64,000 nucleotides of DNA, from NCBI GenBank assembly GCA_964247055.1, contig OZ176054.1:12276001-12340000 (forward strand), given 5' to 3'. The notes below the pieces were generated by a model. It saw only the letters and a list, made by a program, of their open reading frames with translations. It was not told where the DNA came from and did no database searches. Made by a program: the position numbers and the translations under genes. Origin of the DNA: Paragordius varius (lineage: Eukaryota > Animalia > Nematomorpha). Below are positions 2,619 to 64,000 of this stretch, piece after piece. The stretch's first letter is position 1; each line of letters opens with the position of its first letter.

Positions 2619-3772
2619 TAGTTGTGCTCACCAAATCATGACCCGGTCAGTGACTATTATTTTTGACCATGGTCATTTAAAAAACAGCGGCTTTTTAAAA
2701 AATTTGCTAGTAATTTTTTTTAAAAAAAGACAGTAAGATTTTATCACTTAATATATTCTTTAACACTTAGATACAACACATTTATTTTAGTCCTTCGATT
2801 ATAAATTGTTTTGCACTTATCTAACATTATTAAACCGAAATATATCAAAAATGACATGTGTGCAATGGTAAAATTGAAAAATAATACAAAATAAACCGCT
2901 TTTTCTATTTCTATCAATGTTAGATGTAATTTAATAAAAAATTAGCTTTAGTTTCACCAAAATTAAATGAAGACGATATTATGCAAAAATTTTGTAAAAT
3001 AAAAATGGCATCGAAGTAGTTTGACATGTTTTTTTCAAAACAAAATTTATTTAGATATTTTGGTATATTTATATAATTTTTATTAGGATAGAAGCATATA
3101 TTTAAATTATGACCGTTTCCTTAAGTAGTTTTTCCAAAATTATAACTCAAATTTAGTTTGGGGTATTTAGATACCCCAATTTGAATTGAAGTAAAAAACA
3201 TAAATTAAATATTTAAATATACAAAATAATCGAATATTAAATATGCCTATTTAACAATATTTTAAAAATTGTTAAACATGCATTCTTATAACATTAGTAT
3301 TAAAGCTTATCCGGTTATTTCGAATAACAAAACAATCAATCCTTGTGCAAAAATGCAATTATTCCATCATGTGTAAACCAATAAAATGAAAAAACATCTT
3401 ATAATTATATATTAATTCATTGATGAAAGATATTGTATAACAAACTAAGTAAAATTTTTTTGAAATATCCTGTATTAAAAGTTATGTTTGAGATTTAGAA
3501 AGCCACTGGCAAAATTTATTTAAAAACAAAATTATTGATTAAATTGGATTGAATATTTTGCAAATAATAATAATATCAAAAATTATGTTGAAACTTTTAA
3601 GAAAAACATGACATCATTAGTGAAACGCAAGTGTCGTTCAAGCATTTTTTTCACAATCTCCAATATCGCATGATATTTACGTAATTAAAAAGTGGTCATG
3701 CCATGGTAATGACCATGGTTTGACTGGGTCTGACCGGACTTTTTGGAAAAAGCAGTCAGATGCACAACCATA
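2619..3772. mobile_element. hAT-type MITE (TAGGGTTGTGC family) with an internal insertion
   Basis: Degenerate TIRs ta-gttgtgc / gcacaaccata; TSD gacatcac/cacatcac (7/8); homologous to 45134-45757. Confidence 0.65.
2764..3210. mobile_element. TTAA-flanked (piggyBac-like) MITE nested in the hAT MITE
   Basis: Homologous to 35004-35573 (ttaa|cactt.gatacaacaca... and ggggtatttagatacccc subterminal palindrome); right terminus eroded. Confidence 0.4.
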
Positions 3773-49885: not shown

Positions 49886-50089
49886 ATCAACACAATGGTA
49901 TTTGATTGCAATTAATAAATAATCGGAAAAATATAATAACGTTAAATGTGTATAACTTCAATTATTTGTTGTTTTTTACCCATATACTACTGTTTGCTAT
50001 ACGGCAATCAAAAAATGTTTACCAACATAAATGTGCATACTCTAAATATATATTATAAATGTATTGGCCTCTTGTCAAAAATACCTAGT

Positions 50090-50550
50090 TTCTGACACGT
50101 CCCGCTTTAAACGCAGCGGTCTTTTACAGTTCCATATAGAAACTATAGTCTCTCCAGAATGGAGAAAGGAGATATGTCCATGCTTAGGGATTGCTAGTTC
50201 CTAGAGCCTTTTCTTTCTTAAAGCCCCTATACGGTCTGGGCACCGTACTCGGAGTGTATTGGCCTGATAATCAATGGCCCCATCTATCGGCGTGCGTTCC
50301 TACTCCCAACAGTTTGCCAACCTTGTTGGAGGCTTGCTGTCCTGTGTCGCTTAGGTTCGACACCCGCATCTTTATATCGAGTATATAGTTAACCTTTTCG
50401 ATCGTAACCGTACCGTTTTGTAGCAGTTAAGCTCTCATACCGCCACGACTCTGAGATCCTCCAATGCCGACCCAACCCTCCCGTTGGCCGTCATGAAACC
50501 GCTGACGTTGCCCGGTGATCACCACCTGGAGGTGGGAGGATTTGACCACC
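50090..50550 (-). mobile_element. Short non-autonomous retroelement (461 bp) beginning with an HDV-like ribozyme
   Basis: GC-rich island flanked by TSD (C)AAAAATACCTAGT at 50076-50089 and 50550-50563; single-copy empty site at 60198-60211. Confidence 0.85.
50474..50550 (-). ncRNA. HDV-like self-cleaving ribozyme (77 nt)
   Basis: P1 GGTGGTC/GATCACC; P2 ATCCTCCC/GGGAGGGT; P3 ACC/GGT; L3 TCCAGGT; P1.1 CC/GG; GCAA junction; P4 CGTCA/TGACG; G-C-C-A-A with the catalytic C in the genomic-HDV register. Confidence 0.85.
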
Positions 50551-50913
50551 AAAAATACCTAGTACACCCATCAAAATAAAACTTTATTTAATTTTATTTA
50601 TACCATTCCAAACTATTTTTTTTGTTTTTTATCATGTACACATAATCGTTTTTTCATCTATATAAATCAATTTTATCTCAATTTGATAATTTCAGATAAA
50701 ATTAAATAATATTTATCTGATGTAACACACATATGGAAATAGTGATTTCATCTCTGAATTTATTTGATGATTGTACAAAAAATCGTTGTGCTAGACGCTC
50801 ATCGCCTCATCTTCATCTTTACGTTCGGAACCAAACCTAGAAGACACATAATATATCCTTATCTGTATAACACAGCCTATATCTATTATTTAAAATGTTT
50901 GGGATGCTTAATA

Positions 50914-51122
50914 CAGTCATGTATCTTTTTTTATCAAAATTTTTTTTTTCCCTTAAATGGGTATAAATATTTGGTAAAGTATGGAAAAAACAAAAGCTCT
51001 ATGGCAATTCTTACGCTTTTTTGATGAATAAATATTGTTTATACTATAGAGCTCTTGCTTTTTCCATTCTTTTACAAATATTTACACCCATTAATTTTTG
51101 ATAATATAAAGATACATGACTG
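50914..51122. mobile_element. Tc1/mariner-type MITE (CAGTCATG family)
   Basis: TA|CAGTCATGTATC ... GATACATGACTG long imperfect TIR; paralog at 59650-59872. Confidence 0.7.
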
Positions 51123-51545
51123 CATATTAATTTTATACACCATCATGAAATATTTTATATTTCAACAGGCTTATGTCAATGGTTAAAAATTTCTTCATTA
51201 CAATCATGAAAAAAAATGCAAAATGTTTTAGCCTTCTAATTTATGCGATCGATAGGGTAATCAGTAAGTGTTTTCAGAAGATATTTCTTAGGGCATTTAC
51301 CAGTGTTTTAATTTTTTTCTCGATTATTTATTATTTACAATACATTATCAATATATTGATGTTATTTTCAGATAAATATTATATTACTAAATAATCACTG
51401 CGTTTCTTTTACATTCATTTTAAAATAGTATTATAATTATATTTGATACCAAAGGCAGACGAATATTATTTAATCGTCTGCTTAAGAGCTTACACGGTAA
51501 GATATCTAAAATTAAGCAGAGTCCCAACTTCTGGTTAATTGGGTA

Positions 51546-51733
51546 AATAACAGTATGATACATTGCTAAAAAGTTATTAATTATTGCCAAATAGTAAATA
51601 CAACAAAAGGCAGTATTATTGGATAATAGTAGTAAAAAGTGAAAAAAATAACTATAACCCAATAATACTGCCCTTTGTTGTATTTACTATTTGGCAATAA
51701 TTAATAACTTTCTGGGTATGTATACTGTAATTT
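51546..51733. mobile_element. Palindromic MITE family D, right-arm copy
   Basis: Same hairpin as 44921-45120. Confidence 0.7.
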
Positions 51734-59082: not shown

Positions 59083-60330
59083 TTTTACTATTATTAGCCA
59101 ATAATACTGTCCTTTGTTGTATTTACTATTTGGCAATAATTAATAACTTTCTAGCAATGTATACTTACTCATACTGTAATTTACATATCATCAACTCTCT
59201 TTAATATATTATTACGTGTGACAATTTCCAATTAACGAGAATTTGTGACACTGCTTAATTTTAGATATATTACCGTGTAGGCTCTTAAGCAGATGATTAA
59301 ATATTATTTGTCTGTCTTTGGTATCAAATATAACTATAATACTATTTAAAAATGAATGTAAAAGAAACGCAGTGATCATTTATTGATATAATATTTTTTA
59401 TATAAAAGCATCAATATAATTACAATCAATTGTAAATAATAAATAATCGAGAAAAAAACAGACACACTGGTAAATGCCCTAAGAATATCTATGTCCGCAA
59501 ACACTTAATATGAGCCTATCGATCTCATAAATTAGGAGGGGAAAACATTTTGCAGTTTTTTTTCATGATTGTAATGAAGAGTAAACTATTGGATATAATC
59601 CTGCGGTTGAAATATAAAATATTTCATGATGGTGTATAAAATTAATATACAGTCATGTATCCTTTGTTTTATGAAAAATTATTTTGTATCGTTAAATGGG
59701 TATAAATAATTTGTTAAAAAATGGAAAAATAAGAGCTCTCTACTATTAACATTATCATATTCATCAAAAAAGCGTAAGAATTACCATAGACCTCTTGGTT
59801 TTCCATCCTTTACCAAATATTTATACCCATTTAACGAAAAAAATAAATTTTTGATAATAGGATACATGACTGTAATAAGCATCCCAAGCATTTTAAATAA
59901 AAGCTATAGACTGTATCCAGATAAGGATATATTATGTATCTTCTAGGTTTGGTTCAGAACGAGAGATTAAGATGACGGCGAGAATGGTGGTGAGCGTCTA
60001 GCTAAACGATTTTCAGAAATTCAGAGAAATAACTATTTCCATATGTGTGATGCATCAAATTATTATTAAATATTTTCTGAAATTATTAAATTGAGAGAAA
60101 ATTGATTTATATAGAAACGATTATGTGTACATGACAAAGAACAAATAATTAGTTTGAAATGGAATAAATTTTAAAAAATACAAAAATTGATGAGTGTACT
60201 AGGTATTTTTGACAAGAGGGCAATACATTTATAATATATATAGAGTATGCATTTTTATGTTGGTAATTTTTTGATTGCCAAATGGCAAACAGTAGCATAT
60301 GGATAAAAAACAACAAATAAATTCAACTTA
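59083..60330. repeat. Third partial copy: inverted duplicate of about 49950-51620
   Basis: Collinear reverse-complement homology; also a direct copy of 45025-46016 minus two MITEs. Confidence 0.85.
59650..59872. mobile_element. Tc1/mariner-type MITE (CAGTCATG family), paralogous copy
   Basis: TA|CAGTCATG...CATGACTG|TA with an intact TA duplication. Confidence 0.72.
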
Positions 60331-60725
60331 CTCATTTCCTTTTTTACAACATTATTTTTTTGTTTAAGTATTTAAACCTAAGTAAAATACGGAAATGCAA
60401 TTGTGTACCAAATATAAGTTCATTCTAATTGACCCTACTTACTAAAATACTGAATACACCCATCAAATAAATTTTAAACTTTATTAAATTTTTTTAATAA
60501 CAATTCACACTAATCATTTAGTCTTTATATTGTACCCATATTCGTTCTTCTTCTATTTTCAGAAAATATTTTATAATAATTATTTTTTGCTTAAAATTAA
60601 TTATTGATGGATCACACCCACAAATAATTATGTCACCTTTAAATTCTTTGATGATTCGTAGAAAATGGTGGATATAGATGCTCACCATCACTCTCGCCTT
60701 CATCACCATTTTCATCCCTATGTTA

Positions 60726-63700
60726 TCAACCATATATTTTCAACAATCAAAAATTATTACCCAATAATATTTTAATGTTTCCAACAATCAACCATATATT
60801 TCCCACAATCAAATAAAATTTTAATCAATATTACCCAAATTATTTTAATGTTTTCAACAATCAACCATATATTTTCAACAATCAATTAATATTCCCAACA
60901 ATCAAAAATGATGCCCAATGATATTTTAATGTTTCCAACAATCAACCATATATTTTCAATCAAATATATTCTTAACAATCAAAAATTATTTCTCAATAAT
61001 ATATTAATGTTTCCAACAATAAACCATATATTTTCAACAATCAATTAATATTCCCAACAATCAAAAATTATTTCCCAAATATTAATGTTTCCAACAATCA
61101 ACCATATATTTACAACAATCAACTAAATTCCTGAAAATCAAAAATTAATACCCAATAATATTTCAATGTTTCCAACAATCAACCATATATTTTCAACAAT
61201 CAATTAATGTTCGCAACAATCAATTATTTCCCAATAATATTTTAACGTTTCCAACAATCAACCATATATTTTCAATCAAATAATATTCCCAACAATCAAA
61301 TAAAATTACCCAGTAGTATTTAATGTTTCCAACAATCAACCATATATTTTCAACAATCAAATATATTTCCAATATTTACCCAATAATATTTTAGTATTCC
61401 CAACAATCAACAATTTTTCAACAATCAAATAATATTCCAACAATCAAAATATATTACCCAAAAAACAATCAACCATATTTTTTCAACCATCAAATAATAT
61501 TACCCAGTAGTATTTAATGTTTCCCAATCAACCATATATTTTCAACAATCAAATATACAATAATTAATATATTTTACCCAATAATATTTTAGTATTTCCA
61601 ACAATCAACCATTTTTCAACAATCAAATAATATTCCCAACAATCAAATAATATTACCCGATAATATTTTAATGTTTCCAACAATCAACCATACATTTTCA
61701 ACAACCAAATAATATTCCCAACAATCAAATAATATTACATAATAATATATTAATGTTTCCAACAATCAACCATACATTTTCAACAATCAAATAATATTCC
61801 CAACAATCAAATAATATTACATAATAATATTTTAATGTTTACAGCAATCAACCATATATTTTCAACAATCAAATAATATTACCCAATAATTTAAGGTTTC
61901 CAACAACCAACCATATATTTTCAACAATCAAATAATATTCCCAACAATCAAATAATATTACTCAATAATTATTTAATGTTTTTAACAATCAACCATATAT
62001 TTTCAACAATCAAATAATATTCCCAACTATCAAATAATATTACCCAATAATATATTGATCAATCAACCATATATTTTCAACAATCAAATAATATTACCCA
62101 ATAATATTTTAATGTTTGCAACAATCAACCATATATTTTCAACAATCAAATAATATTCCCAACAATCCAAAATTATTTCCCAATAATATAATAATGTTTC
62201 CAACAATTAACCATATATTTTAAACAATCAAATAATATTGCCAACAATCAAATAATATTACCCAAAATATATTAATATTCCAACAATCAACCATAAATTT
62301 TCAACAAATAAATAATATTCCCAAAAATCAAAAAGTATTCCCCTATAATATATTAATATTCCAACAATACCATATATTTTCAACAAATAAATAATATTCC
62401 CAACAATCAAAAAGTATTACCCAAAATATATTAATATTCCAACAATCAACCATATATTTTAAACAATCAAATAATATTGCCAACAATCAAATAATATTAC
62501 CCATTATATATTAATGTTTCCAACAATCAACCATACATTTTCAACAATCAAATAATATTCCCAACAATCAAAAATTATTTCCCAATAATATAATAATGTT
62601 TCCAACAATTAACCATATATTTTCAACAATCAAATAATATTGCCAACAATCAAATAATATTACCCAAAATATATTAATGTTTCCAACAATCAACCTTATA
62701 TCAACAATCAAATAATATTCCCAACAATCAAAGAATATTATCCAAAATATATTAATCAATCAACCATATATTTTCAACAATCAAATAATATTCCCAACAA
62801 TCAAAGAATATTACCCAAAATATATTGATGTTTCCAACAATCAACCATATATTTTCAACAACCAAATAATATTCCCAACAATGAAAAAGTATTACCCAAT
62901 AATATATTTATGTTTCCAACAATCAACCATATATTTTAAACAATCAAATAATATTGCCAACAATCAAATAATATTACACAATATTATTTTAATGTTTCTA
63001 ACAATCAACCATATATTTTAAACAATCAAATAATATTGCAAACAATCAAATAATATTACCCAATAATATTTTAATGTTTGCAACAATCAACCATATATTT
63101 TAAACAATCAAATAATATTGCCAACAATCAAATAATATTACCCATTATATATTAATGTTTCCAACAATCAACCATATATTTACAACAATCAAATAATATT
63201 ACAAACAATCAAATAATATTACCCAATAATATTTTAATGTTTGCAACAATCAACCATATATTTTAAACAATCAAATAATATTGCCAACAATCAAATAATA
63301 TTACCCATTATATATTAATGTTTCCAACAATCAACCATATACTTTCAACAATCAAATAATATTACAATCAATCAAATAATATTACCCAATAATATTTTAA
63401 TGTTTGCAACAATCAACCATATATTTTCAACAATCAAATAATATTCCCAACAATCAAAAAGTATTCCCCTATAATATATTAATATTCCAACAATCAACCA
63501 TATATTTTCAACAAATAAATAATATTCACAACAATCAAAAAGTATTACCCAATAATATATTAATATTTCCAAAAATCAACCATACATTTTAAACAATCAA
63601 ATAATATTCCCAACAATTAAAAAGTATTTCCCAATAATATATTAATGTTTACAACAATCAACCATACATTTTAAACAAATAAATAATATTCCCAACAATT

Positions 63701-64000
63701 AAAAGTATTTCCCAATAATATATTAATGTTAACAACAATTAACCATACATTTTCACCAAATAAATAATATTCCCAACAATTAAAAGTATTTCCCAATAAT
63801 ATATTAATGTTTACAACAATTACCCATACATTTTCACCAAATAAATAATATTCCCAACAATTAAAAGTATTTCCCAATAATATATTAATGTTTACAACAA
63901 TTAACCATACATTTTCACCAAATAAATAATATTCCCAACAATTAAAAGTATTTCCCAATAATATATTAATGTTTCCAACAATCAACCATACATTTTCACC
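60726..64000. repeat. Higher-order satellite, ~78-100 bp units built from ~20-21 bp CAACAATCAA-core monomers; runs off the window end
   Basis: Typical unit tttccaacaatcaaccatata-ttttcaacaatcaaataata-ttcccaacaatcaaataata-ttacccaataatattttaatg; near-identical 78-bp units from about 63670; plus strand almost G-free. Confidence 0.95.

Follow-up and report, generated by a model that had tools for sequence, protein, structure and literature searches.

What is the GC-rich island that interrupts one segment of a Paragordius varius contig, and what moved it there? The window, the whole 64,000-nt stretch analysed (GenBank assembly GCA_964247055.1, contig OZ176054.1, positions 12,276,001–12,340,000), contains at 50090–50549/50550 an insert with a GC content of 50%, against 20% and 26% in its flanks. 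The plus-strand 14-mer CAAAAATACCTAGT borders the insert on both sides in identical copies (50076–50089 and 50550–50563), forming a perfect target duplication of 13 or 14 bp, and its reverse complement occurs once only, at 60198–60211. When 50090–50563 is left out, the joined flanks form one continuous alignment (86% identity) with the reverse-complemented 60070–60345, within a broader paralogy of about 1.1 kb (50550–51645 versus 60211–59075, 79% identity). The first-pass annotation, made from the letters alone, had described a GC-rich insert bounded by a 13–14 bp repeat with a single empty target in a paralogous segment, and both parts of that description hold. It had also allowed that the empty site might be a deletion product or an assembly artefact; with paralogous flanks only 86% and 79% identical, the site belongs to an old inverted paralogue rather than to an assembly duplicate. 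Judged from these alignments, the insertion is younger than the local inverted duplication. Base 50550 is ambiguous, being either the 14th base of the duplication or the first base (G+1) of the element; we count it as G+1 because the copies in 28S genes described below begin ggtggtc.

Inverted paralogous segments frame this region as a whole: in addition to the 79% pair, 36916–41565 matches 58653–54032 at 85%. The short element is present in one arm only of the inverted pair. Beyond the empty site, 60829–63998 is occupied by an 81/82-bp tandem satellite of about 39 copies with 83–89% matches; its plus strand is nearly free of G (GC skew about −0.8), and it continues past the window end.

Turning to the 5' end of the insert, nt 1–76 on the minus strand (nt n lies at position 50551 − n) carry helices P1, P1.1, P2, P3 and P4 in the canonical nested double-pseudoknot order, both by hand placement and in the Rfam alignment (Table 1). 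P1 pairs GGUGGUC with GAUCACC, and P2 pairs AUCCUCCC with GGGAGGGU. The full nested double pseudoknot starting at G+1 that had been read by eye is thus borne out by the helices and by Rfam. Three Rfam models match, each beginning at, or no more than 2 bases from, 50550: RF02682 (HDV-F-prausnitzii, 43.7 bits), RF00094 (HDV_ribozyme, 33 bits against a cut-off of 50) and drz-agam-1 (24.5 bits against 37). The window ribozyme has the best HDV-F-prausnitzii score in the genome, and our own model, R1, scores it at 87.2 bits. The cytosine at nt 64, in J4/2, aligns gap-free with GGCnAA of RF00094 and RF02682; this predicted catalytic base is invariant across all family members. Two peculiarities had been noted at first reading. 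An extra C before P2' proves to be no anomaly, since the stretch from J4/2 into P2 aligns gaplessly to the HDV consensus GGCnAAnGGGA. The first pair is indeed G-C and not G-U, but this is the norm of the family (nine of ten sequences) and the RF02682 consensus, not an oddity. From this structure we infer an HDV-like ribozyme predicted to cleave 5' of G+1, at 50550/50551.

Table 1. Features of the insert, its target sites, the other copies of the short element and the LINEs of the 28S genes. Plain numbers are window positions; L numbers denote loci and C numbers contigs of the assembly.
Feature	Position	Strand	Remarks
Target-site duplication, element 3' side	50076–50089	.	CAAAAATACCTAGT on the plus strand
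Probable SIDE-like short non-autonomous retroelement, full length	50090–50550	-	460/461 nt; missing from the paralogue
28S-like 3' tail	50090–50112	-	gtttaaagcgggaCgtgtcagaa; copy of 28S left of the LINE bottom-strand nick
Element body, non-coding	50113–50474	-	unique to the short-element family; no match elsewhere in the genome beyond a weak extension next to the ribozyme
HDV-like ribozyme (predicted), nt 1–76	50475–50550	-	Rfam RF02682 match and own model R1
P1	50550–50544 with 50520–50514	-	nt 1–7 with 31–37; 7 bp, one G-U
P2	50541–50534 with 50482–50475	-	nt 10–17 with 69–76; 8 bp
P3	50533–50531 with 50523–50521	-	nt 18–20 with 28–30; ACC with GGU
L3	50530–50524	-	UCCAGGU
P1.1	50529–50528 with 50513–50512	-	C22, C23 of L3 with G39, G38 after P1
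P4	50507–50503 with 50493–50489	-	nt 44–48 with 58–62; 5-bp stem
Predicted catalytic cytosine, nt 64 (HDV C75 equivalent)	50487	-	J4/2, GGC-C-AA-C
Target-site duplication, element 5' side	50550–50563	.	50550 shared with ribozyme G+1
Unoccupied paralogous target site, inverted	60198–60211	.	single copy of the target
Short element, window copy	C5	-	only ectopic copy with an intact head
Short element, L002	C2:12.86 Mb		first ~7–14 nt missing or decayed; degenerate ~19-bp duplication
Short element, L006	C7:8.51 Mb		5'-truncated at ~nt 200
Short element, L004/L007	C1:4.74 Mb		two opposed 5'-truncated arms, each with terminal tail; flanks tttt(ga)taacc
Short element, L005	C1:14.96 Mb		28S, short element (ribozyme internally deleted), 28S-like tail, LINE-A ribozyme
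Short element, L003	C1:14.956 Mb		LINE-A 3' end and duplicated 14 nt, then ggtggtc...
LINE-A	L031, 683 to ~4724		ORF 1234 aa
LINE-B	L062, 231 to ~5040		ORF 1230 aa

A BLAST search of the species' own assembly (110.6 Mb, 44 contigs) with the full element returned, among other matches, about 30 to nt 15–71 alone on contig C2 between 1.8 and 3.2 Mb, which is the rDNA array. There, about 30 28S genes are interrupted at one nucleotide by two LINE lineages, LINE-A and LINE-B, whose ribozymes directly follow 28S ...cacagggat. The ORFs of both encode Exo_endo_phos, RVT_1 and C-terminal zf-C2H2 domains, the fingers scoring above the Pfam cut-off in LINE-A and as weak matches only in LINE-B; the two proteins are 41% identical, and the 14-bp duplication gttaccacagggat borders each element. 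Both LINEs are RTE-like, carrying an APE, a reverse transcriptase and C-terminal C2H2 fingers. Their closest relative found outside this genome, P0001, is 26% identical and lies on a 3.2-kb contig with no ribozyme match. Each LINE is headed by an HDV-like ribozyme homologous to that of the short element (about 78–86% identical; over nt 15–71, 86% to LINE-A and 81% to LINE-B by BLAST). Model R1 matches short element, LINE-A and LINE-B alike and finds 21 LINE-A-type and nine LINE-B-type heads in the C2 array. Mobilisation in trans by a partner LINE had been suggested for the insert, and a LINE family with a homologous 5' ribozyme and a duplication of the same 14-bp length is present. One LINE-A head lies outside the rDNA (L044/L029, C7:6169606), in a locus with no LSU match; it is preceded by ...ttttactctgggat, only partly like the 28S target ...gttaccacagggat, and appears to be an off-target LINE-A insertion.

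Could the pseudoknot be a non-cleaving look-alike, the product of decay or chance, with the 5' end set by, for example, a promoter or the end of reverse transcription? The RF02682 score lies 0.3 bits under the gathering cut-off of 44, the first pair is G1-C instead of G-U, and the nested part alone is not unusually stable (folding z −0.6, a value little informative for a pseudoknot). Against this, the E-value of the RF02682 match is 1.5e-6 over 1.1 kb and 3.8e-5 for the whole genome, the consensus of that very model has a G1-C pair, and every position of the core (UCC..G, GGGCAAC, GGCnAA) is invariant between the short element and the LINE ribozymes. In a model-based alignment of ten family sequences, 95.2% of helix cells are paired, compared with 26–60% in slid registers. 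Three pairs have changed on both sides (2:44 and 8:39 in P1, 21:80 in P2), and the observed covariation score was reached by none of 500 shuffles, the support being drawn from three independent lineages only. P1 reads GCUGGAUC/GAUCCGGC in LINE-A and GAUGGCC/GGCCAUC in LINE-B, where the short element has GGUGGUC/GAUCACC, and the inner P2 pair covaries between lineages as C-G or U-A; the covariation that the first-pass annotation had named as a check is therefore found, in both P1 and P2. Finally, the predicted cleavage site coincides with the junction of element and 28S in three lineages and with the insertion boundary in the window. We regard a non-cleaving look-alike as very unlikely. In turn, the short element adds a third independent ribozyme lineage, and with it the case from covariation for the partner LINEs' ribozymes becomes stronger.

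By genome BLAST, the short element itself occupies about six loci including the window, with 79–94% pairwise identity, and its copies fall into two subfamilies with diagnostic changes. Two loci (L003 and L005) lie at the LINEs' 28S nucleotide, starting directly after ...cacagggat and adjoining a LINE copy; the other four are ectopic. The two 28S-site copies belong to one degenerate rDNA island outside the main array (L063, C1:14953000–14962999). The order in this island is the 5' part of 28S, a short element, a LINE-A copy about 88% identical to those of the array, and a second short element that breaks into non-rDNA sequence. No copy was found by genome BLAST in the main C2 rDNA array of the assembly; with 28S-site copies confined to the degenerate C1 island, the family may be extinct. 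The ectopic copies have target duplications of about 11–19 bp, differing 5' truncation points and unrelated flanks, which are not segmental duplicates of each other in the stretches read. The window copy, L002, L004 and L006 all sit in AT-rich insertion sites that differ from the 28S target; in the window, the nicked strand reads cctagt^acaccc, without resemblance to that target. Among the copies the 5' truncation is variable and the 3' end constant, and target duplications and an empty site are present. The two opposed arms of L004/L007 give the impression that priming on the 3' end of the RNA took place from both target strands. No circle junction was seen in the copies, and an exact-pattern scan of metagenome contigs for a conserved body motif gave 0 matches. 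The first-pass reading of the insert as one member of a non-autonomous, ribozyme-headed retroelement family fits these data: further copies with 5' truncations and target duplications, a G+1 shared by the 28S-site copies, covarying helices and a partner LINE.

The constant 3' end is a copy of 28S. The last 24 nt of the window copy match 28S immediately upstream of the LINE duplication at 23 of 24 positions. This tail ends ...gtcagaa, 16 nt shorter than in other copies: in both arms of L004, in L005 and in the more divergent L006, the 28S-like stretch runs on through the duplicated 14 nt to ...cacaggga(t), and none runs past this point into aactggc, the next 28S bases downstream. A complete tail thus amounts to a slightly diverged 28S copy of about 40 nt, made of 26 nt left of the nick and the 14 duplicated nt, and it stops at ...cagggat, the point of ribozyme cleavage. 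Beyond weak motifs it has no similarity to the 3' UTR of LINE-A or LINE-B. A kinship with LINE 3' ends through a CCGC...GCGG hairpin, gtgtca and aaaa was considered and dropped, the pairwise scores being low. The element has two substitutions of its own in the tail, and a tail bearing both is restricted to element copies and one 28S unit at the array edge. This unit (L064, C2:1803000–1810500; tail at about 3130–3175 of the minus strand, C2:1807332–1807354) carries a LINE-B, and the 27 nt before the LINE-B nick show both substitutions (cgCg, ggaCgtg); by its sequence it looks like the footprint of a lost or extremely 5'-truncated short element, or of gene conversion.

For the body, no source was found by blastn, nhmmer or tblastn in the LINE-A and LINE-B loci, in the rDNA (most of 28S, the spacer and part of 18S) or in the rest of the genome. 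An nhmmer search with the family profile lengthens the LINE-A match as far as about nt 150, where the alignment is weak. Since the body has no detectable LINE origin, an internally deleted LINE is a possible ancestor at most; the body could derive from a lineage now extinct or have been acquired by template jumping. Its RNAalifold fold has two compensatory pairs only, with a z-score of about −3 against a rough shuffle control. As first annotated, the element lacks an ORF (none exceeds 65 aa), a tRNA and poly(A); nor does it match any Rfam small RNA other than the ribozyme. A canonical SINE is rejected, there being no tRNA or Rfam small-RNA head and no LINE-derived tail. The motif IVSIWNC near the 3' end, previously taken as a possible relic of an APE N-terminus, was likewise abandoned: when all copies were searched by tblastn with both LINE proteins, no match fell below E 0.1, the best (E 0.12) being one of the scattered ones in no consistent frame.

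On this sequence evidence, we propose that the insert is probably a low-copy, non-coding, SIDE-like non-autonomous element of the 28S LINEs, with the window copy an off-target insertion. An element residing in rDNA would be co-transcribed with 28S and its own ribozyme would set the RNA 5' end at G+1; as the home of the family is 28S rDNA, release would be from Pol I co-transcripts, as in SIDEs, and not from generic read-through, as the first-pass annotation had it. Where a further element follows in tandem, as in L005, cleavage by its ribozyme would leave the 3' end at ...cagggat. With its last 14 nt the RNA could then anneal to the nicked 28S bottom strand, and the LINE reverse transcriptase would copy the element RNA in trans; because these 14 nt are complementary to the bottom-strand primer at the nick, reverse transcription could start by target homology. 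Tail and duplication together rebuild a complete target, which would account for the tandems. The window copy would be an off-target event of the same process, full length at its 5' end and with its tail cut back, a reading that fits its LINE-like duplication length, its tail shorter by 16 nt and its target unlike 28S. Without read-through from a host transcript it is probably inert. A stricter version of this scheme, in which the RNA is excised by two HDV-like ribozymes, ends in 14 target-pairing nt and is copied by the LINE through target homology alone, without a 3' UTR, so that tandems are self-seeding, is offered tentatively, as more doubtful than not. By analogy with retrozymes, such a two-ribozyme RNA, with 5'-OH and 2',3'-cyclic phosphate ends, would also be a circularisation substrate. 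Against mobilisation by the 28S LINEs stand the window target, so unlike that of 28S, and the window tail itself, which lacks the 14 nt proposed to prime.

The family might instead have arisen from the 5' end of the 28S LINEs while its ectopic copies, that of the window included, were moved by a different, non-site-specific RTE-like LINE. The AT-rich sites of the window copy, L002, L004 and L006, unlike the 28S target, would suit such a mover, and with 129 R1 model matches across all large contigs, the genome holds many further RTE-like elements with HDV-type ribozyme heads, and another LINE among them could have acted as the mover. We nevertheless consider this unlikely: when the full element was searched against the whole genome by BLAST, no LINE with its body or 3' end turned up; the tail pattern is confined to copies of the element and a single 28S unit; the 13/14-bp duplication agrees in length with the 14 bp of the 28S LINEs; and the LINE-A copy outside the rDNA indicates that these LINEs can insert off target. 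A further alternative dispenses with a self-propagating family, the copies being pieces of the rDNA island spread by DNA duplication, or one-off template-switch chimeras of a cleaved LINE 5' end, some other RNA and 28S. The six loci are indeed very few, two of them sit within one degenerate rDNA island, and a head joined to an unrelated body and a 28S tail resembles a template-jump chimera, template jumping being a known activity of the R2 reverse transcriptase (PMC3414825). Yet all copies share the three-part architecture and form two subfamilies with diagnostic changes, and the ectopic ones have their own target duplications, differing 5' truncations and unrelated flanks, all of which makes independent chimeras or duplicated rDNA pieces very unlikely. 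A chimera may explain the birth of the family, not its later spread.

Among described LINEs, the nearest relative of LINE-A and LINE-B would be R5, an APE-type 28S LINE of the RTE clade, likened here by description only; Burke et al. (2003) are said to have reported it as a 28S-specific LINE of planaria. We know of no ribozyme, zinc-finger triad or short derivative of R5. Non-autonomous partners of rDNA LINEs are very rare: in Drosophila, R2 SIDEs and R2/R1 hybrid SIDEs make up five families (Eickbush and Eickbush 2012, PMC3414825). Like these, the short element is short and ORF-less, is rare and old, and has a 5' ribozyme homologous to that of its partner LINE and insertions at that LINE's 28S site (L003, L005); hybrid SIDEs also have 14-bp duplications, and the reliance on 28S co-transcription and LINE machinery in trans is proposed here as it is for SIDEs. 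The 3' ends differ: a SIDE ends in an R2 or R1 3' UTR recognised by the protein, whereas the short element, lacking the 3' UTR of its partner LINE, closes with copied 28S target sequence. Moreover, the body of the short element bears no relation to the LINE, the partner LINE is of an APE/RTE-like type with C2H2 fingers and uses a different 28S site, and four of the six loci lie outside rDNA.

HDV-like ribozymes also head R2, RTE, Baggins and L1Tc elements and the derivatives NARTc and TbRIME (PMC6765202, PMC3185411, PMC3774820). The nested double pseudoknot, the cut at the first base of the element and the release from a co-transcript are common to the ribozymes of R2, RTE, Baggins and L1Tc and to the scheme proposed here, and NARTc and TbRIME are likewise short derivatives that retain the ribozyme. 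Since ribozyme-headed LINEs and their short derivatives are established (PMC6765202, PMC3185411), the short element is not a new category; in contrast to NARTc and TbRIME, it shares with the autonomous element only the ribozyme and at most a weak adjoining stretch, and its 3' end is target-derived. Retrozymes and hammerhead-bearing SINE-like elements (reviewed in PMC6765202, PMC7761336) are similarly non-coding, non-autonomous, a few hundred nt long and flanked by target duplications, and retrozymes have the tandem RNA bounded by ribozyme cuts at both ends that is proposed for the short element. Both kinds differ in having hammerhead ribozymes, and retrozymes also in having LTR- or Penelope-type partners and circular RNA, where the short element has an HDV-like ribozyme and a LINE partner. 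Engineered PRINT templates for R2 (PMC13708176, PMC11331408) have the same order of 5' HDV-type ribozyme, cargo and 3' module with rDNA homology beside the nick. They are engineered, keep the R2 3' UTR and end in 4 nt of homology and an A tract, whereas in the natural short element the target sequence spans about 40 nt and a UTR is lacking.

Non-autonomous partners define the minimal RNA needed by an rDNA-specific LINE, and here only the ribozyme is retained, a target copy replacing the LINE 3' UTR. If the short element is indeed mobilised by the 28S LINEs, an APE/RTE-type site-specific LINE would accept a template through 3' target homology, and such LINEs would occasionally insert far from rDNA. 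Both properties would bear on engineered templates that combine a ribozyme, a cargo and rDNA homology (PMC13708176).

Two further observations concern ribozyme heads and LINE-A. About 90 of the R1 matches are dispersed, and the matches include a 67-nt family with at least 17 equal-scoring copies dispersed over C2–C10. Four heads lie about 5.8 kb apart on C8:906878–926813, and others are found, for example, at C7:5743964 and C10:854716; HDV-like ribozyme heads thus seem common in the Paragordius varius genome. In LINE-A, the reading frame is open from just past the ribozyme (L031, position 777), well upstream of the first ATG (945), which recalls proposals that the ribozymes of such elements aid translation initiation.
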